Shown one piece after another: positions 3,204 through 38,542 of a stretch of 64,000 bases of DNA (the first letter of the stretch is position 1; the number at the start of each line of letters is the position of its first letter). The translations under genes and the position numbers were made by a program. The notes under the pieces were generated by a model. It did no database searches. It was not told the origin of the DNA and saw only the letters and a list, made by a program, of their open reading frames with translations. The stretch spans positions 1 through 64,000 of the forward strand of contig DF237444.1 of NCBI GenBank assembly GCA_000708835.1, written 5' to 3'. Source of the stretch: Klebsormidium nitens (taxonomy: Eukaryota > Plantae > Klebsormidiophyceae).

Positions 3204-4200
3204 TTAGTCTTTGCTTTGACTTGTCCCGTCAATCTCCAGTCTGAGTCCCACCCTAGGCCTGTATTTTGCAGCGCCCGAGACACCCTCCGTTCTTTCAGAC
3301 TGTCTCGGGCCAAGAGCCTGTAGCTTCTTGGGCCTCGTTTCCAGTCTTACGCCATCTGGCGCCTCCTCAGATTCTCCGCTTTCGAAAACCCGGCCACCGT
3401 TTTCTTGGTCCTCAACGTCAAGCCGCTCCTTGCTACTTAGCGCAACTTTCCTTTGCGCAACAGCCACCAGATTGCCCAGCGCTCTGAGCGGCCCTGCGCC
3501 CCCCTGCGCGCGCTCGCACAGCGCCAGCATCGAGCCCAGGAGAGGTCGGATCGGCGCAGATGCAGGCAAACCCACTGCATCCCGCAAAAGCAGCCCGACC
3601 GTCGCAATCGTGGACTCGGGATCCATCTCAACCACGTTGCACAACTCTGCGATGGTCTCCAGGGTCTGTGCAAGCTCTGACTCCCCTCCAACAATACTGT
3701 CGCTGCGCTCAAACGACTTCGCCGGGATTGAAGGCTCTTCCGCCTTGGCCTTCCCTTTGCGGTCCGCTTCTTTCTTGCTCGTCTCGTCCTCTTTAGCATC
3801 ACTTCTTTCAAGACCCTTTCCGCCGCTCCTGACTGCACTCTGCGGTTCTTTGCTTCCCAAGCGCACTCCCGGCTCAAGGCCCGGGACTTGCGCTGCCCCA
3901 CCTCCCCGTTCTTCTGGGCCGTCTGTCGCCCCTTCCCCAATTTCCTTTGACCTCTGCTCTTCTTCTCGGAGATGCTCCCCGACCTTCGCAGCTCCCTCCG
4001 TTGCCCCCACAGGCGCCGCTTCGTCCTCCCCTTCTTTCTCTTCGTCATCCTCACCCTCCGAGTCCTCGGCTAACTGTTTCCGACGGCTTGATGACGTCAG
4101 CCGCTGCCGGATGCTGCGCTTCCTGTCCAGCTGGCGAGTCGAGTCTCTCCCTCTGATGTGGCCCTTTTGAAAGAGAGACAGGCGCGCCAGGGTCTCAGCC
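3204..4200 (-). CDS. VPS13: Probable terminal VPS13 exon: acidic low-complexity tail plus a predicted small helical domain
   Basis: Donor after 4618 (CAC AG|gtcagc) and acceptor tttgcag|G at 4200 give a phase-2 join (H-R-A-E-T-L) into the open frame that ends at 3204. Confidence 0.7.
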
Positions 4201-7200
4201 CTGCAAAGAAGCACACGGCTCAGCAGGGGCATCCAGGGAACTGTGATGAGGAGGAGGAAACCAGAGAAATGCTTCGCGTCGCTTCCTAGTGGGGAAAGAT
4301 TTGAGGGTACGAACAAAACTTGACCCCGATTGCGACGCTGATAGAAACGCCAAACTAGAGTAGTCAAGCAAAAACTTTGAAGCACACTCAGGGCAGGCAT
4401 GGCGTGTTTGCAACGAATTCAAGAGCAGACTGTTGCTAGGACCCCGTCAGTTTCTTCCTGTTTCTAAACAGATTTGCTGATCATGATCTCTCTTTTCAAA
4501 AATAGAGAAATCTTTCTTTGAGAACCTTCATATATCTAACGATTTCTCAAAATCACTCCATCAAGTCTATTTGTGCTTGAAGCTTGTTCTTCTCGACACC
4601 CGACCAGAGGCGCTGACCTGTGGTCCGCGTCGTCCTGCGGCCCCGTCAGCTGGTGGTCCACGGTGAAGGTGAGGCCGCGCTTGAACGCGATGGCGTGCCG
4701 GTTCAGCTTGACGAGCAGGCTCTGGTGCAGGTCGCGCGTGCGGCACTTGAGGCGCAGCTGGTGCGGGATGCGCATCTTGGCGCCCCCCAGCGACAAGATC
4801 GCCGTCCACGCAATTGCCACCTCCAGGCGGCCCTCGATGCCCGCCACTGACACCATGTCTGCGCCCCCAGCCGCACGGCGAGTCAGAGGATTGAGGTTTT
4901 GTCATGGCGGGGAAAGACGGTGGCCCCAAGAGCCGTTGCTGGCAAAAGAGAAGCAGTGAAAAGGACCCAGGCCAGAGTGGAAGTAACAAACGCGTGAAGC
5001 TGATTGGGCAGGATTCGGTAGCAAGCGGAACTCGTGCTTGCATCGCCATCAGCCGTCACGACAGCTGTTCAAGGTCCAAAATCTTCGACTCAAAAATCAC
5101 CAGGACAGTCTTATATGCATCTACATAGCATAGGGAAGCGTGTCGAGACCTCCTCGTTGTGAGAAAGGAGATTGCCTGGTAAACTCTCTGAAAAAGCGTG
5201 GGGCCACTTCGGAGCCGCACCTTGGTAGTTGACGACGGCCTTGGCCTTGTGGCTGCGGATGTCGAAGTAGATGACGCGCTGGTCCGTCATCAGCAGCGCC
5301 TTGTGCTCCTGGATCTGCAAGTAGTCCACGATGCGCTCGCCCGCGTAGCGACCCCCGTTCAGCAGGCTCAGCGTCGTCGCCAGAATCTGAAACTCCTTTG
5401 ACGACGCCTGCAGATGGGCGCGAACATACGAGGTGTCAGCACAGTCCTTCTGCTGGACATGCGTGAAAATACCACAACAGCATCTACTTCGACTGATGCT
5501 TCGAGGAGTCGCATCCTAAAACGAAAACGGACGGTAGAAAGTGGACCAAGGAAAGGTGGGGCATTTTCAGGAGTTGCACGCCGGTTAATAAAATTCTCAT
5601 CGGAACCAAGGAAGCATTTGCGACGAGATAACCAAGGCATCCCTCATTCCCACAAGCAAGCCTCCGCAAATCACGCCGACGCCGAGCCCTTCCCCTCTCA
5701 CCTGTACGCCTTCCTCCCGGCCAAAGTTGCGCGGGGGCCGCACCCGCACGAGGGGCGCCCTGATGACGTCATCCCCGATGTTGCGGATCCCCGTGCCGAC
5801 CCCGCCCGCGGTCTTGGACATGCACGCGAAGATGCCGGACAGCGGCTTGGTGACCGCGCCCACCAGGCCGTGCCCCGTGCCCTGCACGCACCCCACCACG
5901 CCGTTCTCCTCCGCGCCCGCCAGCGGGCTCGTCACCAGGCCGCCGATGCCCTCGTAGCAACCCTGGCCCACGCCCTGCGAACGCAGCGAATGGCGGATTT
6001 TGTTTGTAAGGTGACTAGGCTGATCTCGGAATATGAGATCTTGTTCCAGAAGTCAGCAGCGAGCTGGTCCGTCGTCTGAGTGCGCAAGGGGCCTCAATCC
6101 AATGGGGAAGTGGGAAATCTGCAACCATATCCACACCCTCAGCCAAGAAGAAGCCGACGCTCTGATCTTACCGAGAGCAAGAGCAAGAGCTCTTCGTGTG
6201 TAGGCGCGAGCTGTGGTCGTGATTCAAACGATTACTAAATTGTGCGAACACCGTCATCTTCAGAAGAGAGGAGGGAGTTGGCCCAAACGCTTCAGAGCGC
6301 AGGGGGCCCCAATCCAGCGGTGACCTGGGACCTTTGCAGAGCGAAGCCGCACATACTCTGACAAAACGGCAAGAGCTTTCCGTCCGCGATGCGTGCTTGT
6401 GCTTTACCTGCGCGCCCTGGATGAAGGCCTCCTGCGTGTTGGCGGGCCGCTCGGAGAAGCGCTGCACGAAGTCGTCGTCGAGGGAGAGCACGGCGAGGCC
6501 CTTGCTGACGCTGCCCATGAGCAGGCTCATGAAGTTGAACACGCCGTACGCGCTGTTCTTCACCAGGCTGATCGACCCAGCCGCCGCGCCCTTGAAAAAC
6601 TCCTCCGGCCTGCCACACGGGATATGGGCAACCGTCAGCAGCAACCACGATCCTTCACACGCTCTGGATGGGCGAGTGCAGTAAACCAGTTCATCGATCA
6701 TGTTGCGCGGACCCTCCTTTGCTTGTTAGTACTTTTACCGCCCAGCTCTGCACTCCATTCCCTTATTAAAGTCGTATACCACTTCACCTTGCAACCACTC
6801 GGGACGACAAGAACACCTTCCAACATCCCTTCGACAAAACTTCTTAATTATGGAACCAAGGATGGAAAGGTGTAAAAAGCAAAAATGCGGAGAAAGAGTG
6901 GTTACGTGGTGGCCTTGGCCGGCTCGGTGAAGAAGTCGAGGACGCCGGTGCCGAGGGAGTGCACGAGGCTGACGGGCGAGCCGAGCAGGTCGAGGCTGCC
7001 CAGGATCTTGTGGATCTCCTGCAGGCTCTGGATCAGGTAGTGGTTCGACACCGCGCGCACCAGCCGGTCGCTGTTCAGAAACACGTTGTCCAGCACCAGG
7101 CTGCACGCAAAAGAACAGGTTGCGGGGTCAATCAGGAAGTTGCAAGTTCGGATCTTATTGAGATGACCGTGGCGGACAGATTTGGCTGAAGAGAGTTTAA

Positions 7201-10200
7201 TCAAGGGCGCCGACTGTACCGCAATCAAGATACAGCTTTCGTTCAATCAATCATAGCAGCTTTCTGTGGGACAAGCCACCTGGCACAAGGCTGAGAGCAA
7301 GCACTGACGGTCTTTCAGCGGCTCGGAACACTTTGGTGACGGGGACAAGTATGCGGCGGCGGCGGCGCTCACCTGTTGAGGCGCAGCGGCGCGGTGGTGA
7401 AGGAGACGAGCGGGAAGCCGAGCGCGGAGGCGTACTTGCGGACCTGCCAGGCGGCGTTGTCGGCCTCGCGCCAGCCGGGGTCCACCGCGAAGTCGACGTT
7501 GACGCGCACGGGGCGGATGCAGAAGCGCTCGAAGTACCAGCGCGTGCCCTGCTTGCCCGTCACCCAGTTGGCCGGGTCCAGCAGCGAGTGCGAGTACGCG
7601 TCCTGCAGCAAGAACGACGGCTCCGCCCACGACGACTGCACGGGGGGGCGAGGAGTGGGTCAGAGGACAGGTCGGCAAGAGCCGAAAACAATCGATGTCG
7701 TGTTAGAGGCATTAAGCACATCACCGGAAGTGGCACGGAAGTGAGGCCGATTGGCGAATTGAACGATAAAGATGAGACTGCTTGGAGGCAAAGGTATTGT
7801 TGATATTTCAAGCTCCGACCTTGCAACAACATTCGAAAGACGGAAAGACAAGTGGCCCCTTGCTGTGCACACCAGAGCCTCCGCCTAAGGGAGGAGGATG
7901 GCGGCTTGCCCCCCACTTGATTCAATTGTCGTCTGGAGAGACAACAGCAGCATACGAATGCACTCAAGGGGAGGTACACTCAAAACTGTTAAATGTCTGC
8001 ACTGCGCTCTCAAAAAACAGCCTGGTACCACGCTACGGATCATTCAGATTGTGAGTCCCTCACCGCTGCGGCGTACTTGGGGTCGTGCAGGTCTTGCAGG
8101 GGCAGGCCGTGCGCGTACGCGATGAGCGCGTCCACGAAGTCCTCCTCCAGGTGCAGGTCCACCTCTTGCAGCATGAACAGGAAATTCTTGAAATACGTGA
8201 TGCCCGGCTGCCCGCCCAGCACCGCCCACTCCAGCGTCACCAGCGGCAGCCCCACCGCCTTCTCGCGCTCGCGCCGCACGTTCTGCACACGGGTTCCGAA
8301 CCATTGGTTTGTACCGTCCACTCGGAGAAGCATAGTAGGGCAATGAGTATGTCGTATGCAAACAAAAGGACAAACATCTAGGCGGCCGGCCTCTCCCAGG
8401 GCATGGCTCCTAGCTTAGCCGTTCGGTGATCGGCTGGAAAGGAACGAAACTCATGGAATCTGAACGAGCGGTCCTGCGGGTCTGCGGCTCCAGTACATCC
8501 AGCGATTATGGAGGGACTTTCTCGCTGCCAAGCCTCCAAGCAGGCTTTCTTGCGGGCGCCTTGAGGAGCAGCCCAGTACATCTTGCTCCGGAACAAGCTG
8601 CGCCCCACCTGCGCCTTGATGAGCACGACGGGCTGCGTCGTTGTAAGCAGCTGGTTGTCGACCTGCGCGCTGCCGATGGTCAGCTCGTACACCTGCTCGC
8701 GCTCCGACACGCGCCGCGCAAAGTGCAGCCCGCCCAGCGTCACGCGCGCAATCTCGCGCGGCACGTGGTCCACCACCGACAAGCCCACGCCCGCCAGATT
8801 CACCTGCAACCGAGCGGTATTACGTCAGCAATAAAGGCGGAACGAATCTGGTTTCGAGAGGCGCTGTTCCCGAGGGCCGGGCCGGCGACACAGGGTAAAC
8901 GTGCGGCGGCAGATATCGGATGGCGGAGTTGTCAAGCCTGGAGTACGCGAGCACTGGTACTCTGTACATGCACTGCGACGCAAGTGAGGCCCGCCTTGGA
9001 ACATTTTCCCCTCCAGATCAACTGCATCCAATCAGGCAAACATGTGATGGCCTTTGTACAAGGATGCTAGAGTGTACATTGGGCGCCCACCTCAAGCACG
9101 TGGCCTTGGTCCTCGTCGGTGGCGACGACGTCGGAGCGCCAGTGCAGGCGCAGGCGGAGGTCCCCCGTGACGCGGTCCTTCTCGGTGCGCTTCTGCAGCG
9201 TGAGCCACTGGTAGCGCGGCAGCGTGTCGTCCAGGTACGCCACCGGCACGTTCACCTCGCCCACGAACACGTCCGCGCCCACCGCGCGCCGGCTGAACAC
9301 CTGCGCACAGGAAAAGGGGCATTCAGAAATTGTTGCTGCGAATTGCACGTCGAAAAGAGCCTGATCATCGTCCCTTGCAAAAAGGTTTAAGTCGCAAAAG
9401 CAGAACAAGTTCAGCCACTTGGCCGCATCCACCGCTGCAGCAGCTTGGGGCAGGGGCAACAGGCGCCTTCTCGCTCGGGCCTCGCACGATGAAAGGATTG
9501 GCCCCTCTATCTTGCTGCCACGTAGTCCTCCTTTCCTCACCTGCGCAGTGAGCGTGGCCGAGTGCGGCACGCCGTCGAAGACAAAGGCCTCGTTCCAGAC
9601 GGGGAAGTAGCTGTCGTGCACCACGGCGGTGCGCCCGGGGAGCGCCCCCTGGCAGCCCACCACCACATACGCATCACACGAGCGCTGCAGCCCGGGCACT
9701 CCCCCGGCCGCCACGCTGGACAGGTGGCGCGCCTCCACCACCTTCACCGCCAGCTGGCCGACCTCCTCCTTCTTCGCCGTGCGCGACGGGCCCAGCGCGG
9801 GCTTCTTCAAACTCCGCATCTTGCGCATTTTCAGCTTGAGCGGCCGGAAGGGGGGCTGGATGACAAGGGCCTGGGGCCCCCCCTCGCGGTCGTCCATCAT
9901 CTCGCGGTTGATGGCCACCAGCTCCTCGAGCTGCGCGAGCTCTTGCTCTTTTTGGGCGACGGTCAGCGTCATGAGCTCCAGCTGCGTGGCGGTCCAGGAC
10001 GTGGCCAGCCGGATGCGGCCGCTGACGCGGTCGCGCGCGTTGCGGCGGCCCAGCGTGTACCACGACAGGTCGCGGTCCAGGGTGTCGCCGGACACCAGCG
10101 GGAGGTACACCTGGCAGAGAGGAGGGAGAACGGGGGGTATGAGTGGGGCGGAGAGAGAGCTGGGAGGCAAAGGGTGTCAGAGGTCAGCGAGCTCTCTCAC

Positions 10201-13200
10201 ATCTACGTGCCTCGCCTGGCCAAGGAAGCTTTCTTCTCTGCAGAAGAAGAAGAAACGGAAGTTGAGTCGATTACGCGAGAAGGACCAAGAGGGACGGAAA
10301 TACCAGGCCATCCAACAGCGAGAGAAAAAAGGGTTTGGATGAAGAAAGCGCAGCACGCAGCTGCATGCTACTGCATGCGATTGAGCCCGAAACAGACAAC
10401 TGCGTTGTCACTTTGGCAATCCCAGAATCATGCGTCATCAAAAGCGGGCAAGAGCAGGATTTCCATAGCAAAGCGAGCCTCTTTAGCTGAGTTGCTCGAG
10501 CTGTCCCGAGCAATCTTCTATCTTGGCAACTGTCTTCCAGCGCAGCACCTTTTGACGAAAAGGAAAACGAGTCCCCACGGGTCGCGCTCACCTCCCCCAG
10601 GAAGACGTCCCGCCCGACCCGCTCCGCGCTGAAGACGCTGACGTGCAAGTCCGCGGACGTGCGCACGGCCTTGAACGCCAGCTCCTCGTTCCACTGCGGC
10701 TGCGTCGTGCGGCTGCGCGCCGCGCTGCGCTTGCGCTGCAGCTCCACCTCCACCACGCAGTACGGGTTGCAGTGCTCGCGCTTGCTCGCCAAACCCTCCG
10801 CGCTCACCAGCCGCACCACCAGGTCGCCCCCAAGCACCTCGCCCTCCTCCACCGCGCTCAGCTTTCGCGCATGCGCCGCCAAACTGTCTCGGTACACCTC
10901 TTCCTCGGCCGGCCCGCCGCTGCGGCGCTGTGTCCGGGGGTCGACTTCCGGCGACTCCTCCACCTCGCTCGGCCCCCACACCGTGTGGGGGTTCCTCATG
11001 ACCGGCAGGTGGTTGACATTGACGCGGCGCGCGGCGTACACGGTGCGCGATACCGCGGCGCCCAATGTGTCCCCCACAACCTCGGTTCCCCCCAGGAATG
11101 TCGCGGCCGCCGCCCCCGCCGCTGACTGCACAAACTGCTCGGCGCGGTCGCCTCGCGTCGCGGCCAGCGCGTTGCTGACGGCAGCGGCCGCGATCGCGGC
11201 GGCGGCGAACTTATGGAAGCCCTCGACGGAGTCTAGGGATATTCGGGTTTGCCGGCGCGACGACGACGCACGCGCGGCCGGGAAATCCTCCCGGGCATCG
11301 AGGAAGGAGCCGTCGCTGTCCGATTCGGAAACGTTTGTGGCGTGCCCGTTGGAGAAGAGCCCGTTCTCGCCCCAACGCACCAGCTCGCCTCCGCCCTCCG
11401 ACTGCTCGTCCGTGTCGTCAGAGCTTCTCCACCGGTTGCCGCCCATTCCCCGTTGCAAGGAAGAAGCGAGTCCATTTCCATTCCTTTCCGGCGTCGCTGG
11501 TTCAAGGCCTGAAGACAGCGTCTCCGCCAAGCTGGCATCCGGCTCGTGCCCTTTTTCCTCGGCTTCCAATACTCTGTTCGACTCCCGGGCAAAGATGTCC
11601 GCACTTGACAAAGATTGCAAACTCTGCGCGTTAAGAGGACCCATCAGAGGGTTCTGGATCATCTCCGACCCGAATGCTTGCAGACGAGGCTGGCCGTCTC
11701 CTTCCGCTTGATCGCCTGCTGGCTGACTCATCTTCAGCTCTGCCTCGGCCAATGCGGGCGACCATGCCCCATCTACTTCAGAATGGACCGCTGGCTGCAC
11801 ACCAACCGTCTGCACTGCTTTTCGCACATCGCTGTTCATCAGTGCCAGCTCAGCATCCCGACTGAACTCCTCCTTTTCCTTCCGCCGCTTGCTTTTTCTC
11901 ATCCTCAACCGTTCCATCGCTGCCGCCAGAACGCCCTTCCCCGACCCCGCACTTTTCGCATGTCCGTTCGCCCCCTCCTGCCGGCTGCTCGTCCCACTCA
12001 GAGCGATGACGTCACTATCACGTGAAACCGACGGCACTTCCGTCAGCTGGCCACCAGAGCCATGCCCCCCGTTGACCGACGACCCAGCATCCAATGTAGC
12101 TGAAGCTGGCAGCTGCCGTTCCACTGCGAGTCGCTCCATCTCCCTTCCAGACACCTCCGTGAGGCCACCCTTCGGCTTCAGACGCTCGAGCACCTCCACC
12201 GCCGCCGCTTTCGACGCGGCCGCCGACCTGGCGAGCGGAGACAGCGGCCGCGGTCTAAGCGGAGCCACTGTTGGCCCGCTATCAGCTGGCTTGCGCAATG
12301 CTGCCTCTTCGTCGGCTGCCGCGGGCGCTTCTTGCGCTCCCTCGAAACCCGGACCCCCCGACGCGAATCGGGCAACTTTGGGACCACTGTCCCGGCTGCC
12401 GGCCCCTGCTGCTCTCGCCCGTTCTAGTTCAGCTGCCATCCAGTGCCTGTGGCCCAGCCCGTCTTCAGGATCGAATACGCGAGCAGACAGCCCCCCCCCG
12501 CCTCTCTCCGCTTCTTGCAGCCGGCTCTCGATACTCAACGACCTCCTCGTCTCTGCGAGGGTCGGCCGCTCGATGTGAGCTTCCTCCACTTCGGGCGGCA
12601 GCGACTGGTTCCTGCGGTGACCCCCGGACCGCATCGGCACCAGCGGGCTCGTGAAGATGTGCCTCTCGCCATCGTTCCCGGTGGGCGAGAAAAACAGATC
12701 GGGGCTGGTAGGTCGGCTGCTCAGCGCGCTGCCCGCCCCAGGCGGGGCGTGCGGGGCGTCCTTGTGCGACCCCCAAGAGAAGCGCCTGGCGCGCTCCAGA
12801 AACGATCGCCGCTGCTCCAGCTTGCGCTGGTGCATCTCCACCGAAGCGGTGGGGGACTGCGGGAGGAGAGAGCCCGGGGGGGTGCCGTCCGCGCCGGAGG
12901 TCGCAGACTGGACCAGGGGGGGACGCTCGCCGGTTGTGGGGTCGATGGGCTCCTGGCAAGCCACCAGTCGATTGTCAGTGAATAACGGAGGAATCGACAC
13001 TGATAGCCGGACAACTTATCACCGCTGTTCGTAGGGCACTTCCTTAGGGTTCTTCAAAAGATCACCGAGTCAGGCCAATGTCCCCTGCCAGAAGCGCACA
13101 TCCAGTAACTTGCACAGACATCGTAGTGCAATGTGAATGCGCTACTGTGCGCTCCACACCTGGTGCCTGACGGGGAGGGGCAGCGCGGGGTCGGCGAGCG

Positions 13201-16200
13201 CGTCTTGTGCGGCGTCCTTCTGCTGCTCCAGCAGGCGGCGCACCAAGGCCAGCCGGGCGTCCAGGTGCTGCAGCCGGCGGACCACCAGCTGCCGCTCCGC
13301 CTCCTCCGTCTCTCTGGAAAGCGTACCCCAACGGGTCAGACTTCAAACTAAGGGCTTTGGTATTCACTTAGGATTGGCTTTCACTTAGCATCGGACGATA
13401 TAAGGCGTTCGCGCTGGGGTTTGCTACACTGGCTGATGTGTTGAACCTTGCTTTCCCCGAAGCAAGCACAGCTAGAAGATTTAAGATATTTTCAAAGAGC
13501 TTCCACATTCAGAACGAAGGCCTGAAAGTAGAACGGAGCAAAGTGCTGCCTCACAGACTTCGAGGCTGCTTCCCGTATCGAAGCTTGACATGTACGCTCA
13601 GAGAATAAGGAAGCGGTGAGCCTAGGAAACATCTTCTCCTGGAAACAATCCTTGTTCCCAAGATATTGGCTCTAGATCCAAGCCATTGATGAAAGATCAA
13701 GAGGATACCCTGGCTGCGCCCTACGGCCGTGCTCACTTGGAGTACTGGCTCTCCACGTCCGAGAAGGACAACACACGGGTGGCCCCATCCGCATACACGT
13801 TCACGTAGATCTTCTCAGCGAGCGACTCGTCCGACTGGTCGCTGCCGCCGCGGTTGCCAAGGAAGCTGCAATAAGAGTCATTTGCGTGAGAGTGAGGGAG
13901 TGCGCAAGCTTCCTTCAGCATCTCGTCTTTGGAAAGACTTTGATTCACAAAGTGCAATCTCGTGGCGCAAGAAGTTGCAAGACGAAACGCACCATCGTTG
14001 GACTGAAGAATCAGCAGCAGAAGGGACGCAAGCAAAAGCAAAAGGAAAGCCGGTTGCGAGTGCTATTCCAACAGCGGAGCAAGCGAAAACCATTTGCTTC
14101 ATGCGTCTCCTGTGTAGTGGGGCGGCAGTTGGGCTGACCCGCTCTTGGCGGGCCCCCGCAGCACGATGGGCTGCCGCACTTTAATGTCGTCCAGCGAGTA
14201 CTCGCGCACCACGGGGGGCACCGTGCCCAACACCTGGACCACCAGCAGGTTCGGCGCCTTGGGCTGCGCAGTACGAATACGCACCGGGTCAGAGCAGTGG
14301 ATAGGAAGGAACGGTCAAGCGCTGTCTGGCTGGAAGTAATAGATTACGCAACCTTGATCAGAGAGCGGCTTGTAAGCTGGACCAGAACAAGTGACCTCTA
14401 CACCATCTTGCAGGAGTTTTACATATTCCAGAACTAAGACAGGCAAGCAAAGACCTTCCTGCTGCCCCAGATCGAGCTTTGCCACGACACCAAAATTTGA
14501 AAGTTCGATGGTATAGATTGCCCGTCTTCGGCTCTCTGTGCTGCTAACCTGGTCCCAAGCGTAGGGGATGGCCTGCTTGCTCTCCAGCAGCTGCCACGCG
14601 TTGATGTTCTTCTGGCTGATCTGGAAGGCCATGCGCGCACAGCGGTTCTCGACGCGGTACGGAATGCGCTGACTGGCCTGGTCCGAGTTGTCGCACAGCT
14701 CAAACGTGATCAGTGCCGACGCACCGTTGAGCGAAACGTCGATTACGAAGATCGAGTACTCCCCTGCACCAGGAGGGAGAGCCATGAGATTCTCAACGGG
14801 GAGCAGCGCAGTCGGCACGGAAGGAGAGAGGGTGCAGCGACTAAGCTTTCAGATTAGCTTTCAAGCAACGGCTGAACCTTTGTCCATTTTTCGTGACCCT
14901 TCACCTATCATGTTCCGCTCTTGCTGGAAGCCAAGACGGCTCTCGTGTTCGTGTCGACCAAAAAGCATGCAGCAAAAGAAAGCAGAACTCCCAGCGGAGA
15001 CGTGCGAAGCCCGTACGTGTTCCTGCATTGCGAACCCTGATCCCGAACTCGCCGGCCTTGTCAATCTCGAAGCTGCCGGACCAGTCCCAGACGCCGTCCA
15101 GCGGCCGGATCTGCAACCGGTCCTCCGCCCCGTCGTGGTCCCAGTGATACGCCTCGCGCACGCCGTCGCAGAGTGTCTGCACACGGAGAAAGGGGCGTAG
15201 CTTTTGAACTTAGGGCAGGCGCTTGCAGCTGAAAGTGAAGTGGAGTGCATTCTACGAGATCCAACTGTTGCTCCCGGACACTTACACTCTAAAGCGATTG
15301 CCGTTTGGACCCCTGTCCGAGACCATGCTACCAAGACAATGCTCAACTCTACCAGTCGTGACTGCAGGATACTGGACAGATAAACATACCAAACCGACTT
15401 GAACGTCCACGTGGCTCACCCGGATGCTGGCGGTGTCGACCTGGCGGTACTGGATGTCGATGCCGCTCTTGTTCATGAGCACGAAGCGCGGCGTGATGGT
15501 GATGATCTTGGTGCGGTGGTACCACGGCGACGGCGCCAGGTTGATCTGCACGCCCAGCTCATACCGCATCGCCACCTGCGCGCGCAGCACGCACCCACGA
15601 TTTATCTTGGCCGCATCCTTAAGCGCTGCATCGGTGAAAGGTCTTCCAGACACGCGTTCCGTATGCGCTTCAAACAGATCCACGATCGGCTTACCAGACG
15701 GGCAGAGGAGCGGCTACTAAATATCCCAAGGGAAACTCTGTCTGCAGCAGTACTGGGGTGGAAAAGTGAGTGCTGGCCCAGATCTCCAACCGTATAGACA
15801 GAATTCTTTATGGGAGCTGGTCCGCGCACCTTTTGGTGCGTCTTGGTGAGGTCGGAGGTGACCTGCACGGCCCCGATGATGCCGACGGAGTCGATGGGGA
15901 TGTTCTTGGACCAGCGCGTGCCCGGCAGGCTCACGATGCTCTTGCTGCCGCCCCCGCAACCGTACAGCACCGGCCGAAGCTCGTCGTCGTCGTCCTGCAC
16001 AGCACACGTACCTATCAGACGTCAAATCATGGCTACATTTAATGAGGTTTTCGGCAGGAGACGGGTGGGGCTGGTTTGAGGTTTCTAGGTCAACAGGGGA
16101 GCATCTGACTCCGGGTGTCTGGGGGTTCTGTTTGTGTGAGCCTGGGGTTTTGATGCAATTCAACGTGGGCCAAAGTGTAAACAAAATTGAAATGCACCTG

Positions 16201-19200
16201 CGTCGCCCACTGCACAAAGCGGGCGACCGTTGGACCGGGCCTCCAGCTTTGCGCATAATTGCTGGACCTCGCAGGACTGAAGTCTGCACAAACAGGCCAA
16301 AGCTACACAGACTCGAACGCACAGTACACAAACGAGCGTTACTTCCACTTTGGAGAGCGTCGTAGATGATCCAGCCTGCCAAACGTCTCCAGCAACGATG
16401 CAATTGCCGCTCACCCGCTGCGGGGAGCACACGGTTGGCTCCTTGGTCTGGTTCCGCGCCGCAAAGTAGAGCAGCAAGTTGGTGCGGTTCATAATCCAAT
16501 ACTTGGAGAAGATGACCACGCGGCGCGCGCGGGCGCGGCTGGTGGCGCGATTCTCAATCTGCAGGCGCAGCTTACGCAGGCCGCCCGTCGGTTGCAGCAC
16601 CATCTCGCGCGGCAGCCGCAGCCCCGGCAGCTCGTGCAGGAACGGGCGCGGGCCCAAGTGGTCCTCCAGCATGCGGCTGCACACGAGAAACGAACAACAG
16701 CGCACCAGTTAGAAGAACCGGGCACTTTTATGTCAACAGGCCAAAACCTGCCCTTAGAGGGAAGCACAGAGCATACTGCGCTCCTGCTAACAGCCCAAGC
16801 CCCATTCAATTTGTGCCCCCCCCAGCTCGTAAACACTCCAATTTTTCAAGCAACCTAATGAGATTCTGGGTTGCGAACCTCCTCCAACTCTAGAAGCAGC
16901 AATCCTGTGGCCGCCCGCAAGTGCAACCTTTGGAAGAAAATGCGAGTCGGAACTTCTCCCCGGGGCCTCACTTGGGCGGGAGGTGGAGGAGGACCTTGTG
17001 GTCGGTGTGGAAGCCCGCGACGGCGGCGCTCATCTCCAGCTTGTGCTCGAGCGTCATGTTGTACAGGTCCGCGGACGTCCCGGACGGGATGCGGCACTGC
17101 GCGTCCAGCCCGCTGTCCGCGTCCACCACGGTGGCCACCATCTCGTACGGCAGCGCGTTCTCGAGAACTAGGGGCGGGCGGAACACGAGGCAGAACTCCT
17201 GGACCGCGCCGGCGCTGATGAGGTCAGCCTCCTCCACGGGCTTTACTTGCAGGCAGCAGTAGAAGGGCACGCCCGACGGCGCCAGCGAGGGGCACGCCAG
17301 CAGGCCCTGCTGCTCCACCAGGTGCGCCGCGCTCAATTGGATCACGTCCTTCTCCGCGCGCAAGTAACCCTGCGCCCACAAGAAGGATGGTCAGAATGTG
17401 GGCGTTGGCCACGAAAGCCGATGTTAGCGAGGTAGATGCGGTGCAAATGCGAAGTCAAAGCCTGCGTTGATCAACACCGGTGCATTGTTTCCTTTTACTC
17501 TTTCGGAAGGCCCACATTTGGGACCTGACGAAGCAAACAAATGCAGTAATTCAGAGCGAGCCCGCCAACGGTCGGCATCAGGTTTGACGCAAATCCCACT
17601 GATACTCGCAGGGACTTCTGCCGCCGCTGCCATGCAACGTACTTTGAAGACATTCGTGTCAAGTAAATATTAGTCCGGAACGAACTCGAAGGGGCTACAC
17701 TTATCGCTTGCATCACAATGCGGCGACTATTATTGTGCAATCACAAGTGTCTGTTCGGGAAGACCGGGTATATCGCCAACAAAATTGTAATGTATGAAAC
17801 ACAAGTCGACCTCTCGATCTCTTTCCATCTATCAAATTGAGGCGTGGGAGGCGGCAGTGGTGCCTACCTCTGCTTGCAGGTACAGCTGGCCTCCTCGGGC
17901 TGCCGTGATGGGCAGATAGCAGGTGTCGCCCGACCGGAGAGGGCCTGCAGGCGCAAAGCAAAGATGCTTCAACGTTCCTGCGCTGAAGAGCTCATCTGGC
18001 CCAGCGTGACTCTGTTACGAACCTCGACGCTCAGGAACGTGAAAGATGCGCTTGAAAACGATAACAGCTGGTTGGAACACAGCCGAAGAAGCCTCGAACC
18101 GCTGTGCTAGAAGAACATGGGAAGAAGTACCAAAATGACAATGCTTACATGCTTGCTATCTTCTAGCGCAGTTTCCTTACAGGGTCCTGGCTTGGTACAA
18201 GATCTCGTACCAACACCGGACAAACAAAGCTGGCCATCGACTAGGCCGCATCCACGAAAAGCTGAAGTCAGCAGTCGACATAAAGTCCAGCACCACGCGC
18301 CGCGCCCCTCACCAATGGCGCGCTCCTTGGCTGGACTGGGCACGGTGGGCAGGTGCAGCCAGAGGTGCAGCGGGTGGCTGGTCTCGTTGACGAGCTGCAG
18401 CGTGGAGTGCACGCTGAGCAGCTTGGTGCGGTCCACCAGCGTCACGTCCAAAATCAGCGGCACGTTCGCCTCGTCGTACGGCGCGCGCAGCTCCATCACC
18501 GACTTGCCCACCTGACCACACCGCACGGCCACGCTCAGAACGTTCAGGACGACTATGGACGAGCAATTTTAGTGACCGCTTTGAGGCCAGCGGACCTTGA
18601 GTGCTCCTTGTGTGCAACATCCATTTGATTCCAATAACGCGACTCTGAGCTGACAAGAACAGCCAGCTTGCGCAGTCTGGGTGCGTGCCGAACGAAACCT
18701 TTCAGAAACCTACCTTTGCAAACGAACAAAACCGTAGGTGCTGCCTAGGTAAGAGAGTGTTGCCCCTGACGCTCAAGGACTTCTTGAGACGTGCATACCC
18801 ATTCCTGGACCACTGAGCCACTACGCTTGCAGCTTTGTTCCCCAAGATGCACTTGCCGCACTTTACCACCCACAGCCGCCAGCAAATGTTCTGATCCGTT
18901 GTTCTGTACCTCTTGCTCTATGGCAAATCCCGCGGAAGTATATGACTGTATGACGCCCACCTTGTCGACCACGACGTCGTTGACGGGCGCCCAGTTGCCG
19001 CGCAGCTGCACGGAGATGGTGCGCGCGCGGACCTTGCGCGAGTCGCGCAGCGTCACCACCTTCTCCACCGGCTCCACCGCCAGCGGCAAGTCCTCGCCCG
19101 GCGCCACCTGGTGCGACCGCCGCTCGCCGCTCTCCTCCTCTGCAGGGACACATCAAAGAAGGTCCATTCATGGACATCGTGTGCAAAGGCAGGGGATCGC

Positions 19201-31200: not shown

Positions 31201-34200
31201 TCGCCAAAGGCGAAGGGCGACAGGATCAGCTCCACTTTGGAGACGTCGACGGACATGCGAACCAGCTGCAAGAAGCACCGAACAGCGTATCAAGTGAGCA
31301 TCCTGGCCGAAATACAAACCATTTTATGCTACGACGCAATTCGGAAGTCACGTCTTCTTCAAGCAAACCCGTCTGCAGATCATGCTCAATGTCGACGCTC
31401 AGAGCATCGTTCTCATTTTGAGGAAAGCAAGAAATTCGCACCTTGGTGGCTATCTTTGAGACGGGCTGCCGGCAGAGGGCGTGGGAGAGGCGCAGGTGAA
31501 CGCGGCGGATGAGGGGCACCCTGCACGCACAAGGAAACATAAGCCCCTCGACTTCACTGCTTCCATGACTTCTGAGGCTGCGCACTTGCGCTTCAGCTTT
31601 GAAGATCTAGGCCACATCAAGCCCCCCGGGATAAACAGCAGAGGTTACGCCCTCTTCGTACAGATCAGAATATGACCAGAAACCACAAACACCCAATACG
31701 ACGCTGCGAGAGTCACACGGCTTGTACTCCAGCTTTGTCAAAAAGCCTTTTTCTTTGGAGGGGTTTTGCCTCGCACCTGTCTTTGTAGTCGTTGTGGGCC
31801 CCCTTGCCGACCCGCGCCAGGAAGAGCTCAAGCGTGAGCGCCGCCTTGCTGATGTCGAAGCGCAGCGGCGCGAGCAGGCTGTCGTGGTGGGACCGCATCC
31901 ACAGCTCGTCCTCCGACGCCGCCTTCTTGCTCACGGGCAGCTCCTGCAGCGGGCTGCACCGCCAGCGCAAAGCCAGGGTCAGCTCTGGGCTAAGCATCAC
32001 TGAAACGGGTTCCACCACACGTAAGCTCTAGTTTTCTGTTGCTCTACGAATGACCTCGAACCGTTGAGACCCGCACCGATTTTGACAATCTGGCTGCCAT
32101 CGCCGTCCCTTCCGCTTGCCAGGAGCATATACGACCGCAAAGAGAGATCGCAGAACATATCAGTAGACGCCCACCGGTTTGAGTCCATTGTGCAAGCACC
32201 TTCCTCTGCTGCACGTCAGCTCTGTCGTAAAAAGAGTATGTTGCCCACCTGCGCTTGGACAGGTCCTGCCGGTACTCGTCCGAGTGCACGTGCAGCCCGC
32301 TCATGATGACGACCAGCGAGTGCCGGTGCCGCGTCCCGTGCGAGTGCGCCTCAACCTCGCACGCGTGCTCCGCGGGCTTCCGTTTTGACGGGCTCTCAAG
32401 CACTTCTTCCACCTCCGCAAACACGCCCTCGTTCTCGTGGCACGGCACGATGATCCTGACGTCCCCCATGGTGAAGTCCAGGTGCGGCAGCCGCGTCGTG
32501 CGCCGCGCCCGCCGCGCCAGAATTTTCGCTGCGCAGTCGCTCACTTCGTCCGCCAGCGACGCCTTGTACCGCGTCGCCGCGTTCCCCCTCGCCGGGCTCT
32601 GCTGCTCCTGGAAGTACTGCAGCTGCTGCCGCGACATGTGCTCGGGTTGCTGCCCCGGGCCGCGGTCCGGGCTCTCTACCCCTCGCTTAATGGGAACCGC
32701 CTGTCGGAAGAACCGCCCGAGACGTGCAAGCCAGCCATGCTCCTGAATCAAGTCGATGGGTGCCAAGCGGACAGTGCAGGAGAGTCGTTGCCCCGCCGCT
32801 TCCTGCTTGCTGGACGGCTTGGTGATCTTGACGGTTAAACAATCAATCTTGGTCGCCGCCTCGAGCCCCGCGGGGCTCCGTAGCAGCTCCACCGAGCGGA
32901 AAGCCCGCGCAGTTTGAAAGTCCCGCAGGTGCATCGCGCGGCACGTGCCTTCGAGCAGCACCGCCCCCTGCCGCCGCTCTCCGCGCGCCCCGATCTGGAG
33001 AAACGACATCTCCCCGCCCCAGTCCTTGTCCTTCCCGGATGACAGCAACAGGCTCACTTTGGGGCAGTGGATCGCGAGCCCCACCACTCGGTAGCGCGCC
33101 TTGCCGCGGCGCTGAATGCCCCGGGCGCCGCTCAGGATCGCGTCAATCTCCTGCATCTGCAGCCGCAGCGACTCGCTGGGGTCCTCCTGCTTGCGGAACC
33201 AGCGGGAGCGGGCCTCGCCGCGGCGCAGGCGCGCGCACGCCCACCACCGGAACTGCGCAATCTCCTCGGGGCCAAGGCGCGCCTCCAGGTGGCGCAGCGC
33301 CGCCAGCTGCTCCCTGAGACGCAAAGGAGAGCCAGCGTCTGATCCCGTGCCGGAGGTCATATGCAGTCGGAGATCGCCCTTCTCGTGGATTGAAGCGCTC
33401 GCGACTTTCATATCACGTTTCTTTGTCGGGGTTTCGCGTAAGTCTGAGATTGCAGACTGCATGGTTTTACGCCTCTAAGAGCATCGTATGTAGGTCGGAA
33501 GGCCACTGTTGAGCAGTTCTCCCATTGAGCCAAAGATCCACAGTTCACGTACAGAACATGAAAGGGCGTTGAAGGGAGAGCCTGTCACAAAGGGCGAGGT
33601 ACAGCACCTTATACAGCTACAAGCATCAAGACGCCGCAATCTATGGAAGGAAAGCCTTGCGAAGCCCTCACCTGAGGCTCTTTTTTATCTTGGAGAGCCC
33701 CCCCGCTTTGTGTATCTCGGTGTACAGCTCCACGTAGCGTCGTCGCATGGCACGCCGCTCCTCCAGCCGCGGCGGCAGCACGGTCGACCCCACTGACAGC
33801 TTCTTGAACTCGCGCAGCACCGCGGCCCCTGCGTGCTGCCACCACAGCATCGGCGCCGCCCGCACGGTGGCCTGCGGGCGGGGTCCCCGAAACTCCTGGT
33901 ATTTGAGAAACTCGGTGATGCTGCTCACGGAGGCAGTAAGCGCCTTTTGGACGAGCTCGTCCACGCTCGCGATGAGCGCGCCCGCAGTTATCGTCGTTTG
34001 CCACACTTGCTGCCGGCTGGGCGTGTGGCCGCAGAAGATCTGGGGGACGAAGGAGAAGAGTGAGTTGGTGGAAGCAGGGGAGCGATGCGGGAAGTGAGGA
34101 TGCTAGCGAGCGGGGCAAATCAATTAACAGAGATATTACTGCCTCCCTTCTCCCAAAACTCTCGTTCGGAGGCTTCTAAAGCAGGCTGTTCGAACAGACA

Positions 34201-36953
34201 ACAGCCGGTGAACAAACACTTCTTCGCACCACATACATTCGCTTAGATCCAAGTCTTGGCGGACATGAATTTGGTACCCCGACGAGGATTTCAGCGTATC
34301 TGCGACAAGATGTGTGCCGTGAGGTCTGCGCATACACGTAGTCTCGACAGCCAGCTTACTTCTGCTGAAGCGCTCCACCTCCTCAGCACTGACACAGTGC
34401 GCCTCGATGACTCGTCCATCTGGGCAAGAAGAGAAGAAGCTTGAGCCTTCATCACGAACTTGAAACAAAAGCATATCGAAATGTTGAAGTGCTGCAGCAG
34501 TTGTGACTGAGCAACGAAGCTGGAACAATTTCAGATTCTGTCCCGTCTTCCTTACCAACAAGCACGGAGGGTCTTCGCAATCGTGCTTCACGTCCAGCGA
34601 GACGCCTCGAATCCGAATCTCCTGCATCGGAAACAGATTACATTAGCTCGCGACTCTGGCTCTCATGTGCTGGCGCGTAATGCTGCCAGCATAGGGAAAA
34701 TACCTGATCTGCATTCTAAACGCCTCCCTGGAACGACGCTTCTGAAGTCCCGAGACAATGCTGAAGGCATGCAGTTGCATTCTGTTTGATGCTACGATAA
34801 TCAATCAAATGGTCAACTATCGCCCCTCGCCAGGGTGGCAGCCACTCACCTTCTTGACCAGCTTCCTGCAATTGGGGACTTCCTCCCCGGTCTTAGCTTC
34901 AACCATCCTCAGAGAGTCGACAGAGAAGTGCAGCTCCGCATGTGGATCCTGACACACAAGAGGACATCGTCAGGAACTGCCCTTTCGACTTCAAGTGGAA
35001 CCCAATTAAAGAACGAGACGATGGAGACGCCTTCAGTAACTGTCAATGAGAGAAAGAAAATCGAGGCAGGGATTCGCAGCAAGGGAAGGCAGGGAATCCG
35101 GCTTGACATTTTGGTCGGCTACCAGCGCTGATCGGACTTTTCAACGACACCATTGAACCAACTTTATTGAAGATAGGGCGTGAGACGTACCCCGACTTTG
35201 CTGTCGTTCTGGTAGGACGCTGAGACCCTTTCAACGGATAGTTCGAGCTTGGTTAGGAGGATGCGGGCAGCAGGGAGCAGAACACTCCATAGGAGGTGCT
35301 CAACAACGCCTGCACCAGACATGGCAGGTTCATTGTTCCTGTGGCGGCTTGCTTCTCAAAAGAGGAACGAAACAAAACCACGTAATCCTCCCGAAAGTAG
35401 AGGCGACAATTGCAATGCGACTGAGGCAAAGTCCCACCATGAGTATTGATGATCTTAGCCATTGCGCTAGAGACGTTGAGGACAGGAAGTACCTTCTTTT
35501 CGGCTTGGTAAGTCTTGTTTCCACAGGACGGCCTCGACGGCGTCAAGGTACGCCAGCTTCAGGAGCTCCTTCTTTCTGAAGAGACGAGCGTCCAGGTCCG
35601 CAGCGGTGACAGGCTGCAGGACGAACATGCTGCTTGGGTTAAGCTGTGAACACTGCAGATCTCAACGGGGAAGGAGTATCTTGCTGGACAACAGTTTGTG
35701 CCAGATGCAACCTCTGAACATTCTTTTGGCACTCACAGGAGCTGTTCAAGGTGTCAAACGGGGGCTATGAGAACAGCAAGTTTTCGGTCCAACAGGACTC
35801 TTAAAGAAAGACAGAAGTCTAACAAGGGAAACAATCATAAATGGCCCAGTACAAATAGCAGCTGAACGAGCAACCAATGGGGCATTTCTTGCGATTGGAC
35901 AGAGCATCAGGACCGCCACAAATGCATCTTCGAAGTTGGCAGATGCTCACCTCGGGAAAGACTCGTGGATGGGCTTCGAGCCGGACGTCTGAGATCTCGA
36001 TCCCAACAACGTCCAACCGGCACCTTCTCCAGTGTAGAGCGATACGGAAAGAGCCAACCGAAGCTGCCAACGCAAGGCCAGCAGAAATTTAACAACTCAG
36101 ATCTGGGAGCAAGTTATCCTTACAAGTCCGTGCCACTGTCACTGCCCACAGCATCAATGACAGGAGCACAAAACGTGACTGGAGAGCATCAAATTGTCCT
36201 GAGATCTGATTTGTTCAGTTGATCGAGACCAAAGGAGATGGGCAAAATACGAAGCAACATTGTCAGTGATCAATTTACCTTGCTTCGTTAGCATGGGCAG
36301 GTCCAGTTGGTCCATGATCCTTGGCGATATGTGCATGTCGGTCACCAGGATGTAACCTAAACATGACAATTAGCCCAAAATCACTCAGTATGGTTCGCAT
36401 CACAATCATTTGCAGGAAGGCGGTAGCCATAAGCCTGAATTGTCTGTCACGGCAATCCACCGCTTTCCAGATGTTTGTAAGCCATTGGGACGAAGAGGAT
36501 GCTGAGGTAAAATGCGCAAATTTCCCACAATCAGGCAATTGATCAGTTCACACCAACCACAGTGGCCGACTTACCCCTCCATATTGAGCTCCTGACTTGA
36601 TCCTTCTTGATTGTGCCAGTATATCTTTTGAGGGCAATGGAAAGAAGCCCAGCCAGTATCCGGTCTCCAATTAACAGAATAAGTACAAGGGCTGCTAGAC
36701 ACAACCCCAGGAGCATATACTGCTGCCCAGAGACGCGCCAACTAGAGCGGCGCCAGCAAGCAACCCAACCAGTGTATTCTTCCTGTGCCGGACGCTCAAA
36801 CGCAATGCTGTTGATCAACTTCGTCAGTGCAACGGTGATCATATCTTGGACACCTGCAACCGAGGCAACAGCCCGGGCAACAAGTGATGCCAAGGCGTCC
36901 GAAGACATGTTGGCATCAAGCATCTCCATAGATTGGGTCATTATTGCCTGCAT
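3204..36953 (-). CDS. VPS13: VPS13-family bridge-like lipid transfer protein, multi-exon (dozens of exons, several thousand aa). Start codon uncertain (in-frame ATGs include 36953, 36842 and 36716).
   Basis: Spliced exons give Chorein_N (LLSIALKRY..KDQVRSSIWRG|YILVTDMHISPRIMDQLDLPM..|SVGSFRIALHW), the VPS13 N-region motif (YQEFRGPRPQ..MLWWQHAG..RRRYVELY), VAB/SHR-BD repeats (FRPPLVLENALPY; TKIITITPRFVLMNKSG; WSGSFEIDKAG; PYRVENR), VPS13_C (VNLAGVGLSVVD..REIARVTL..QVDNQL; FERFCIRPVRVNVDF), ATG2_C-like glycine-rich helices (GSLDLLGSPVSLVHSLGTGVLDFFTEP; GLVGAVTKPLSG) and a PH-like end. The junctions I checked are GT-AG and phase-compatible. Confidence 0.95.
9140..10835 (-). CDS. VPS13: Two tandem C2 domains inside VPS13, separated by a short coiled coil
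   Basis: C2-1: LVVRLVSAEGL..NPYCVVEV..TTQPQWNEELAF..VFLGE|VYLPL..WYTL..SGRIRL. C2-2: LAVKVVEARHL..DAYVVV..RTAVVHDSYFPVWNEAFVF..|VFVGEVNVPV..WLTL..TGDLRLRLHW. Both carry the P-x-W-N-E-x-F hallmark. Confidence 0.88.
13733..19110 (-). CDS. VPS13: VPS13 adaptor-binding (VAB / SHR-BD) repeat exons
   Basis: Motifs WAPVNDVVVDKVG, PPLVLENALPYE, VIFSKYWIMNRTNL, WSKNIPIDSVG, ITPRFVLMNKSG, IRVRNAGT|REYSIFVIDVSL and KIYVNVYADGATRVLSFSD. Confidence 0.85.
35951..36650 (-). CDS. VPS13: VPS13 Chorein_N exons (N-terminal cap of the lipid groove)
   Basis: Three exons join in phase (..TGG AGG G|gtaagt; ttag|GT TAC..CAA G|gtaaat; gcag|CT TCG GTT GGC..CCC GAG|gtgagc) and give the Chorein_N pattern. Confidence 0.9.
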
Positions 36954-37555
36954 TGCTTGCAAGAATTGACACCATTTCTTCCTGTGCTACCCCAGTCCTG
37001 CCCCAACGACTTGAATGATTCCATGCACTGCATGTTGCCTTCTTGCCAGAAACCGTCAAGGTGCCGGAAGGTGTGCGGCATTAAGTAAATCGGCTTGATG
37101 GCGTTCATCAACGATCTACCACCTCGAAAGATGGAAACCATCGTCTTTCAATTGCACCTTCAGTGCATGGGCACTCGAGTGACCCCGCCCATCTGTAGGA
37201 TAGGTACACGACGCGCCATGGCGCCTCCGCCTAGCAGCTTCCGATCGTCATCGAATGCCAGCATGTGTCTTGTCTTGGCGGTAGCCGGTGTCCATCCCCG
37301 GTCTGGACAACAGGCGGGACGGCTAGAAAACCATCACATCGAGTGATTTATGTCAAGCTTCTGAGACCATCAAGATCATCCTTTTCAAGACGACCGTCAA
37401 AGAACCGTCAACTCAGAAGCCCCCCGGCCGCCGCCACAACAACAGTATTGTTCCGGGCCAGACAGGAGGGCACTCCCTCCCAAACGCACACGTTGGATGC
37501 CAACAAGCAGGGTGCGCATGCGCGCGCGGGCTGGACACCAAACCCCTGCAGCATG

Positions 37556-38271
37556 CAACCCAGACTCACGGTCCGTATTGAGAAAACCCCTCGTAAAGCC
37601 ATTTTGGTTTTACGAGCAAATCGTTCGATGTCCGTAGATCCGTATTGGACAAATTTATTGTTTTCGCTGGGGCCGTATTGGAGGATTTGCTCGATGCGGA
37701 GAATGCCCTATCGAGCGATTTGCTCGATTTTTGGACCGAGGCGCCTAGATCTCCGGTACTTTCAGGGGTCGGTCCGGACGATCTCCGCCGTCGAACCAGG
37801 TGACCGCCGCGACCCACAACATCGGTCCACACGACCGCCTGGATCGCGGTACATAAAGGACGGTACCCCTATGGGTGGATGGTCGGGGCGGCGGGCGGCT
37901 GCAACTCCCCAGGGACACCGGACCCTTCCACCTCTAGACTAGTAGTTTGGGGACCGTGGCACCCGAGAAGCAACCGGGCCCTCCCTGTGACATTAGGGTC
38001 TCGCGGGCAACCGGCGAACAACCGGGCAACTCCATAGGGCAACCGGGCCTTCCCGCCTTAGGGTTACACCACTGCGAGTGACAACCGGGCAAGTACTTTT
38101 TCTTTTAGTGTGTGCCCGGGGCTTTCCAAAAATCAAGACTTTTTCCCAATAGGCGCTACCAGAAAACGAGCAATTTGATCGATACCCGGCCGGCCGTATC
38201 GAGCAATATGTTCAATATGCTTCCGATGGCTTTACGAGAGGTTTTCTCGATACGGCCGTGAGTCTGGGTTG
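37556..38271. mobile_element. Non-autonomous TIR element (MITE-like, ~716 bp) with ~47-bp TIRs and a 7-bp (or 8-bp) target-site duplication
   Basis: Left arm CAACCCAGACTCACGGTCCGTATTGAGAAAACCCCTCGTAAAGCCAT (37556-37602) matches the reverse complement of 38226-38271 with 2 substitutions and 1 indel. CAGCATG flanks both sides (37549-37555, 38272-38278). Five internal CAACCGG(G)C repeats lie at 37971-38090. Confidence 0.85.
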
Positions 38272-38542
38272 CAGCATGAGATTCTCGAGATTGAAGGTGT
38301 TCAAAGCGCGGCACAGAATGAAGCTCTCGAGTGGTTCCAACAGCTGTTCTCTTCAAGTTTAACACTGACAGGGCCAGTCGTTTTCTTATCAGTGAACTCA
38401 CCACCATTTTGATGTGGCAAGCCCTTCTGAATCCCGCCGAAGCATGTGGTGTCGCTCATGCACTTGGGCTTGGTGAGCGCTGCTGCTAATTAACGTTGTT
38501 ATTCAAGTTGTGTGTTAAGGGCCAGGCTTCAATCTGTGGACA

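Follow-up and report, generated by a model that had tools for sequence, protein, structure and literature searches.

How is a VPS13 protein held at a membrane? Canonical members of the family (VPS13A, VPS13C, VPS13D, and yeast Vps13) begin at an amphipathic helix, are peripheral, and are recruited through FFAT-VAP contacts or other adaptors; they have no transmembrane helix. A gene on the minus strand of contig DF237444.1 of Klebsormidium nitens puts the question differently. It lies within a stretch of 64,000 nucleotides (the window, to which all positions refer), and the start of its Chorein_N domain is directly preceded by a strongly hydrophobic segment. We consider it likely that this locus is the K. 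nitens VPS13Y gene, KFL_004950010 (protein GAQ89183.1), and that it encodes a bridge-like lipid-transfer protein with a membrane helix of its own. The N-terminal helix is real, but it has been known at the level of the clade since 2023. A VPS13 equipped with an anchor of its own departs instructively from the rule of adaptor-based recruitment.

The segment, Y-MLLGLCLAALVLILLIG, occupies 36719-36666 (minus) and runs for 18 positions without a charged residue, just as a sequence-only reading of this DNA had described it. It is followed by D and R and then by the first Chorein_N helix, ILAGLLSIALKRY...IWRG, which begins ILAGLLSIALKRYTGTIKKDQVRSSIWRG, so that a spacer of only about 2-3 residues separates the two within the same exon. 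The hydrophobic stretch has a Kyte-Doolittle mean of 2.99 over 17 residues, and this 17-mer ranks as the most hydrophobic of the 78,875 stop-free 17-mers in the six frames of the window. Its sum on the Hessa scale is likewise clearly negative. The open frame that encodes the first Chorein_N helix stretches from a stop at 36989-36987 to the GT donor at 36574-36573 and contains ATGs at 36953, 36941, 36929, 36923, 36908, 36842, and 36716 (minus), with no further in-frame ATG between 36716 and the exon 1 donor. Inspection of the frame thus bears out the earlier statement that no ATG separates the hydrophobic segment from Chorein_N. The next Met after the helix sits in exon 2, and a start there would delete the first Chorein_N helix. 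Searched against the PDB, the exon-1 peptide and its profile gave chance-level matches only (ADP/ATP carrier, E 0.73; ND1, E 5.6).

Does the segment reach the mature mRNA? RNA runs were searched with 32000-37500, the matching runs each carrying about half of the sampled words, and contigs from four runs, belonging to four studies and two organism labels, were placed on 33000-38900. The two labels are attached to identical RNA contigs, which would fit a renaming of the strain. Spliced contigs of 15.9, 16.0, 11.6, and 1.8 kb in the four runs define nine joints, all of them CT..AC on the plus strand, that is, GT..AG introns of a minus-strand transcript. Exon 1 ends at 36575 in phase 1, and all ten exons are in frame. 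Exon 1 extends unbroken from 36575 in every run, to 37554, 37546, 37416, and 37406 respectively, and shows 0 mismatches and 0 joints. The hydrophobic stretch is therefore retained in the mature mRNA, where the helix segment and the first Chorein_N helix are both present and co-exonic. Splicing into an acceptor below 36666 would have left the helix out of the protein, and no such joint occurs in the dominant transcript of the four runs. An upstream exon joining the AG at 36671-36670, just past the helix, was also considered and rejected, the joint being absent in all four.

What protein does the remainder of the gene encode? GAQ89183.1, annotated as hypothetical protein KFL_004950010 of K. nitens, has 4973 amino acids. 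When compared with the window by tblastn, it matches exon after exon in collinear order, from 36716 to 3207 and mostly at 90-100% identity, and it is because of this collinearity across the window that the gene is identified with GAQ89183.1. A search with exon 10 returned only fragments from close relatives, and in a cluster look-up an exon-10 fragment of a relative clusters with GAQ89183.1. Along the protein, the order is predicted transmembrane helix, VPS13 N terminus, VAB, C2-C2, and a weak VPS13_C match. Residues 1-420 match the solved VPS13 N terminus 9yrm_B (E 3.6e-11), 6cbc_A (E 3.3e-7, query 19-143 to chain 4-123), and VPS13A 9yg4_B (E 1.2e-4), with VPS13C and ATG2A matched more weakly. 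In the alignment to 6cbc, a solved N-terminal fragment of Vps13, residue 19 of GAQ89183.1 falls on chain residue 4, so the helix is an addition that abuts the canonical VPS13 N terminus. Exons 2-9 (33672..36356, minus) encode the rest of this N-terminal region. Pfam VPS13_N is matched at profile positions 5-92 (residues 20-107, E 3.4e-5) and 301-407 (E 4e-12), both below the Pfam whole-family cut-off of 80 bits, and at the exon level it is matched on exon 9. Exons 2-7, searched singly against Pfam and the PDB, gave nothing, as expected for 22-40 residues. VAB is present as a full domain (PF25036, E 2.8e-59, residues 2301-2870, profile positions 14-568 of 570), with five exon-level matches between 18568 and 14318 that are collinear with the profile. 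Two stretches of the full protein match C2 (PF00168, E 2e-34), both encoded 3' of the VAB exons, and open reading frames of the window match C2 at E 2.6e-15 and 3.7e-13. The VPS13_C match falls short of its cut-off (E 0.0011, 19.3 bits against 21), and Pfam finds neither ATG_C nor PH in GAQ89183.1. With the canonical VPS13 proteins, the K. nitens protein shares VAB and the homologous N-terminal helix and strands (6cbc and VPS13A, at the E values above); the canonical proteins differ from it in lacking tandem C2 domains after VAB.

This architecture has been described before. Leterme et al. 2023 (Contact 6:25152564231211976, PMC10683392) defined a VPS13Y clade in which TMHMM predicts an N-terminal transmembrane helix in most sequences, and in the other VPS13 paralogs no transmembrane domains were predicted except in Beta vulgaris VPS13X. 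They proposed the ancestral layout TM-Chorein-VAB-C2-C2-ATG2_C-PH, where TM is the transmembrane helix, and considered membrane anchoring a possible group-specific feature of VPS13Y (PMC10683392). The clade ranges over Prasinodermatophytes, Chlorophytes, and Charophytes (PMC10683392), and K. nitens, a charophyte, fits that range. Its VPS13Y (KnVPS13Y) was modelled with 12 RBG (repeating beta-groove) domains, residues 1-1200 forming a canonical tunnel (PMC10683392). In a full-text literature search for VPS13Y, this was the only paper found. By its own measure, a published clade of VPS13 proteins with a transmembrane helix, the sequence-only reading fails as regards novelty, the published clade including a K. 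nitens member (PMC10683392). Its proposal of an integral-membrane VPS13 otherwise holds to the extent that computation can reach, with a strongly predicted membrane helix in the mRNA whose hydrophobicity is kept in two relatives. The protein shares with VPS13Y the predicted N-terminal transmembrane helix, Chorein_N, VAB, two C2 domains after VAB, and, to the extent of a weak VPS13_C match, the C-terminal VPS13 region. There is no difference in kind, although here the start likely lies about 64 codons before the annotated Met and the helix may be internal. What is added here is transcript-level evidence that the helix is retained in one exon with the first Chorein_N helix, the exact register, with the helix ending three residues ahead of the counterpart of residue 4 in solved Vps13, and a probable error in the annotated start. 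As a separate matter, a kinase domain has been reported in the region of residues 2870-3712 of KnVPS13Y (Leterme et al. 2023, PMC10683392), and Pfam shows no kinase domain at 10830-13015 (minus; GAQ89183.1 residues 2870-3712) at E values up to 1.

Is the helix conserved? In a set of 5.8 billion proteins, the exon-1 peptide has one relative, P0001, from genomic contig L001, which is 73% identical over all 125 residues with no indels. A profile search of 1.84 billion representative proteins adds P0002, from a 68-kb metagenome contig (L002), for a total of only two. N-terminal alignments drew no match in two metagenome scans, and a word-based search with residues 1-420 of GAQ89183.1 also came back empty. 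At the nucleotide level, exon 1 aligns to L001 without an indel at 83-86% identity; intron 1, used as the neutral comparison, aligns at 63% identity with six gap events. The helix of P0002, AAFLALAIVFSFLFLVL, has a different sequence and a Kyte-Doolittle value of 2.91; it is followed by KDRIVAALLSLALRRCTGPIKKHQVR, and the motif after it, DRI..LLS.AL.R.TG.IKK.Q.R, is the same. The hydrophobicity and position of the predicted helix are thus kept across the two relatives while its sequence diverges. Might the stretch nevertheless not span the bilayer, and instead dip into one leaflet or, by prolonging the first Chorein_N helix, pack against or plug the hydrophobic groove? AlphaFold2 draws residues 76-111 as one continuous helix that takes in both the hydrophobic stretch and the Chorein_N helix, the core is just 17 residues long, and the domain begins three residues away. 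However, the predicted local distance difference test (pLDDT) score of that model is 52, the 17-18 consecutive uncharged residues are mostly Leu, Ile, Val, and Ala, and hydrophobicity that is conserved without sequence, as in P0002, is typical of transmembrane helices and not of a packing interface. The published TMHMM prediction for the VPS13Y clade (PMC10683392) disagrees as well, and we find a non-spanning stretch quite improbable.

With a membrane-spanning helix as the preferred reading, where does translation begin? GAQ89183.1 is annotated to begin at the ATG at 36716, with the hydrophobic MLLGLCLAALVLILLIG as its very first residues, and two of the ATGs further upstream, 36953 and 36908, are conserved. 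Compared with L001, codons 1-16 look neutral (omega 0.96; differences by codon position 3, 4, 3). Codons 17-79 have an omega of 0.34, differences by codon position of 9, 5, and 18 (p = 0.016), and no indels; when substitutions are placed at random, as few amino acid changes without a stop arise in 2.6% of trials (P = 0.026). They resemble in this the undisputed coding part, where omega is 0.22 over the helix and 0.48 over the Chorein_N helix. The substitution pattern points to purifying selection on the roughly 64 codons that precede the helix. P0002, a distant relative, has for its part no Met at the helix. Its sole upstream Met aligns to window residue 17, and L002 has an in-frame stop 36 nucleotides upstream of that Met. 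Because of the selection on codons 17-79 and the lack of a Met at the helix of P0002, the translation start is probably the ATG at 36908-36906 and not the annotated one. In that case a conserved extension of some 64 residues would probably come before the predicted helix, which would occupy about residues 65-81 and so be internal.

For the extension, Pfam and the PDB gave no relative; AlphaFold2 draws it as a long helix (pLDDT 52), and its net charge is negative in all three sequences. The chances seem to us evenly balanced that the public model starts too late and that VPS13Y of the Klebsormidium lineage carries this predicted-helical extension of about 64 residues, lumenal if the channel is cytosolic. 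If true, this would be a lipid bridge with a small extracytosolic domain absent from all described VPS13, BLTP1, and BLTP2 proteins. The probable start error also has a practical side, as it matters for cloning or N-terminal tagging in topology and localization work. Could the stretch instead be a cleavable signal peptide, or be skipped because translation starts further downstream or a minor isoform is made, leaving a soluble, conventional VPS13? The annotated protein does open with the stretch, much as with a signal peptide, the ATG-rich leader leaves the choice of start uncertain, and the contigs miss rare isoforms. But cleavage would place a protein of some 5000 residues with cytosolic-type modules (VAB, C2) in the lumen, and skipping is opposed by the lack of an in-frame ATG after the stretch and before the first Chorein_N helix, the exon 2 Met being too late to keep that helix. 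The upstream extension is under selection, and the four RNA runs contain no alternative joints. A cleaved or skipped stretch seems to us scarcely credible.

How might an anchored VPS13Y work? The helix would serve as a signal-anchor and keep the lipid-entry end permanently lodged in the donor membrane, most likely the endoplasmic reticulum (ER), with the extension facing the lumen and the channel facing the cytosol, while the C-terminal modules, C2-C2 and VPS13_C, would bind the acceptor membrane. Having its own anchor, the protein would not need recruitment of the FFAT-VAP type. In two of the three sequences, positive charge is greater on the C side of the helix than on the N side. Together with the negative extension, this fits an arrangement with the N terminus outside and the channel in the cytosol. 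The anchor could also be a true one but of a different membrane, for instance the outer envelope of plastids or mitochondria, where it would act as a signal-anchor. Its core of 17 residues is moderately short, the C-side flank that follows is basic (3-4 K/R within 15 residues), and the host organism is photosynthetic. A short core followed by a basic C-side flank resembles what is seen in signal-anchored proteins of plastid and mitochondrial outer membranes. The very high Kyte-Doolittle value of 2.99 speaks against this placement, since very high hydrophobicity favors insertion into the ER. In nearly all studied cases, moreover, the VPS13 N terminus acts at the ER (Levine 2022, PMC7613979). 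An anchor outside the ER we therefore regard as unlikely.

Do other lipid-transfer proteins offer a precedent for a putative signal-anchor at this position? Hobbit and Tweek each begin with transmembrane helices, that of Tweek being followed by an amphipathic helix (Levine 2022, PMC7613979). With BLTP2 (Hobbit) and BLTP1 (Tweek, Csf1), the K. nitens protein has in common that the RBG1/Chorein_N end is held by the protein's own predicted transmembrane helix, and with Tweek/Csf1 that this helix comes directly before another helix. At its N-terminal end it may work as they do, but it is not a member of either group, which have an RBG set without VAB and a transmembrane helix at the extreme N terminus. 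The Klebsormidium protein has VAB and the VPS13-type N-terminal region, hence its place in VPS13, and its helix probably lies behind the conserved extension. Likening the helix to the BLTP1/BLTP2 mode of anchoring, as the sequence-only reading did, is thus reasonable but inexact, the helix probably being preceded by some 64 residues. A second parallel is to the extended synaptotagmins, a similar tether role having been suggested for VPS13Y (Leterme et al. 2023, PMC10683392). They too combine an N-terminal membrane anchor with C-terminal C2 domains in a self-contained tether of two membranes (PMC10683392). Unlike the Klebsormidium protein, extended synaptotagmins have an SMP (TULIP) lipid module, a hairpin anchor, and no long RBG groove.

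Several points weigh against the account of an anchored VPS13Y with an N-terminal extension. (i) The equation of GAQ89183.1 with KnVPS13Y rests on species and matching architecture, the main text of the paper giving no accession. (ii) RNA contigs are blind to rare isoforms and to the start of transcription. (iii) The leader carries 18 upstream ATGs, which makes the choice of start codon uncertain. (iv) The case for the extension draws on two relatives only. (v) The flanks of the window's own helix are ambiguous, with +3 on the N side and +2 on the C side. (vi) The AlphaFold2 prediction for the exon-1 peptide (three sequences, pLDDT 52) is too low in confidence to be read beyond secondary structure. 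The coordinates of the gene's features are collected in Table 1.

Table 1. Features of the probable VPS13Y gene of K. nitens, given as window positions
Feature	Position	Strand	Evidence
Exon 1	37554 or further, down to 36575	-	RNA contigs
5' leader of exon 1, at least 450-600 nucleotides, 18 upstream ATGs	36954..37554	-	RNA contigs
Codons 1-16, first in-frame ATG to conserved ATG 36908-36906; probably leader	36906..36953	-	omega 0.96
Conserved in-frame extension, codons 16-79; missing from annotated GAQ89183.1	36717..36908	-	omega 0.34
Predicted transmembrane / signal-anchor helix MLLGLCLAALVLILLIG; GAQ89183.1 as annotated starts at its ATG, 36716-36714	36666..36716	-	hydrophobicity, tblastn
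First helix of VPS13 N-terminal (Chorein_N) domain, within exon 1	36575..36665	-	alignment to 6cbc
Intron 1, GT..AG	36357..36574	-	spliced out in 4/4 RNA runs
Exon 2	36356-36279	-	RNA joints
Exon 3	36063-35951	-	RNA joints
Exon 4	35613-35493	-	RNA joints
Exon 5	35309-35191	-	RNA joints
Exon 6	34948-34850	-	RNA joints
Exon 7	34621-34556	-	RNA joints
Exon 8	34419-34360	-	RNA joints
Exon 9	34039-33672	-	RNA joints
Exon 10	from 33313 downwards	-	RNA joints
VAB domain exons, GAQ89183.1 residues 2301-2870	14549..18526	-	Pfam, tblastn
C2 domains: first ~10828-10580; second ~9759-9538 plus 9357-9088	9088..10828	-	Pfam, tblastn
C-terminal exons; weak VPS13_C match ~5413-5222; last GAQ89183.1 codon at 3207	3207..5413	-	Pfam, tblastn

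What lies upstream of the coding region? Within the leader, an upstream open reading frame of 66 codons, starting at 37141 (minus), overlaps the first in-frame ATG. The proximal 80 nucleotides of the leader (37036-36954) are 79% conserved in the relative, and further upstream conservation is about 45%. An Rfam search of 36500-39500 found nothing. Beyond the leader, inverted repeats of 30 nucleotides, 93% complementary, lie at 37573-37602 and 38226-38255 and flank about 620 nucleotides. Over 37925-38320 the RNA contigs are short and variant-rich, with a depth of 300-800 and many loose ends. The interval 37573-38255 has the look of a multi-copy element bounded by terminal inverted repeats, similar to a miniature inverted-repeat transposable element. 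The VPS13Y transcript contigs end about 20 nucleotides before the inverted-repeat arm, and because a repeat element adjoins them, their 5' ends probably reflect breaks in the assembly, not the start of transcription. Further upstream, a separate transcript contig at 38284-38789, present at a depth of 45-70 in all four runs and with a loose end at 38789, marks a neighboring expressed gene upstream of VPS13Y.

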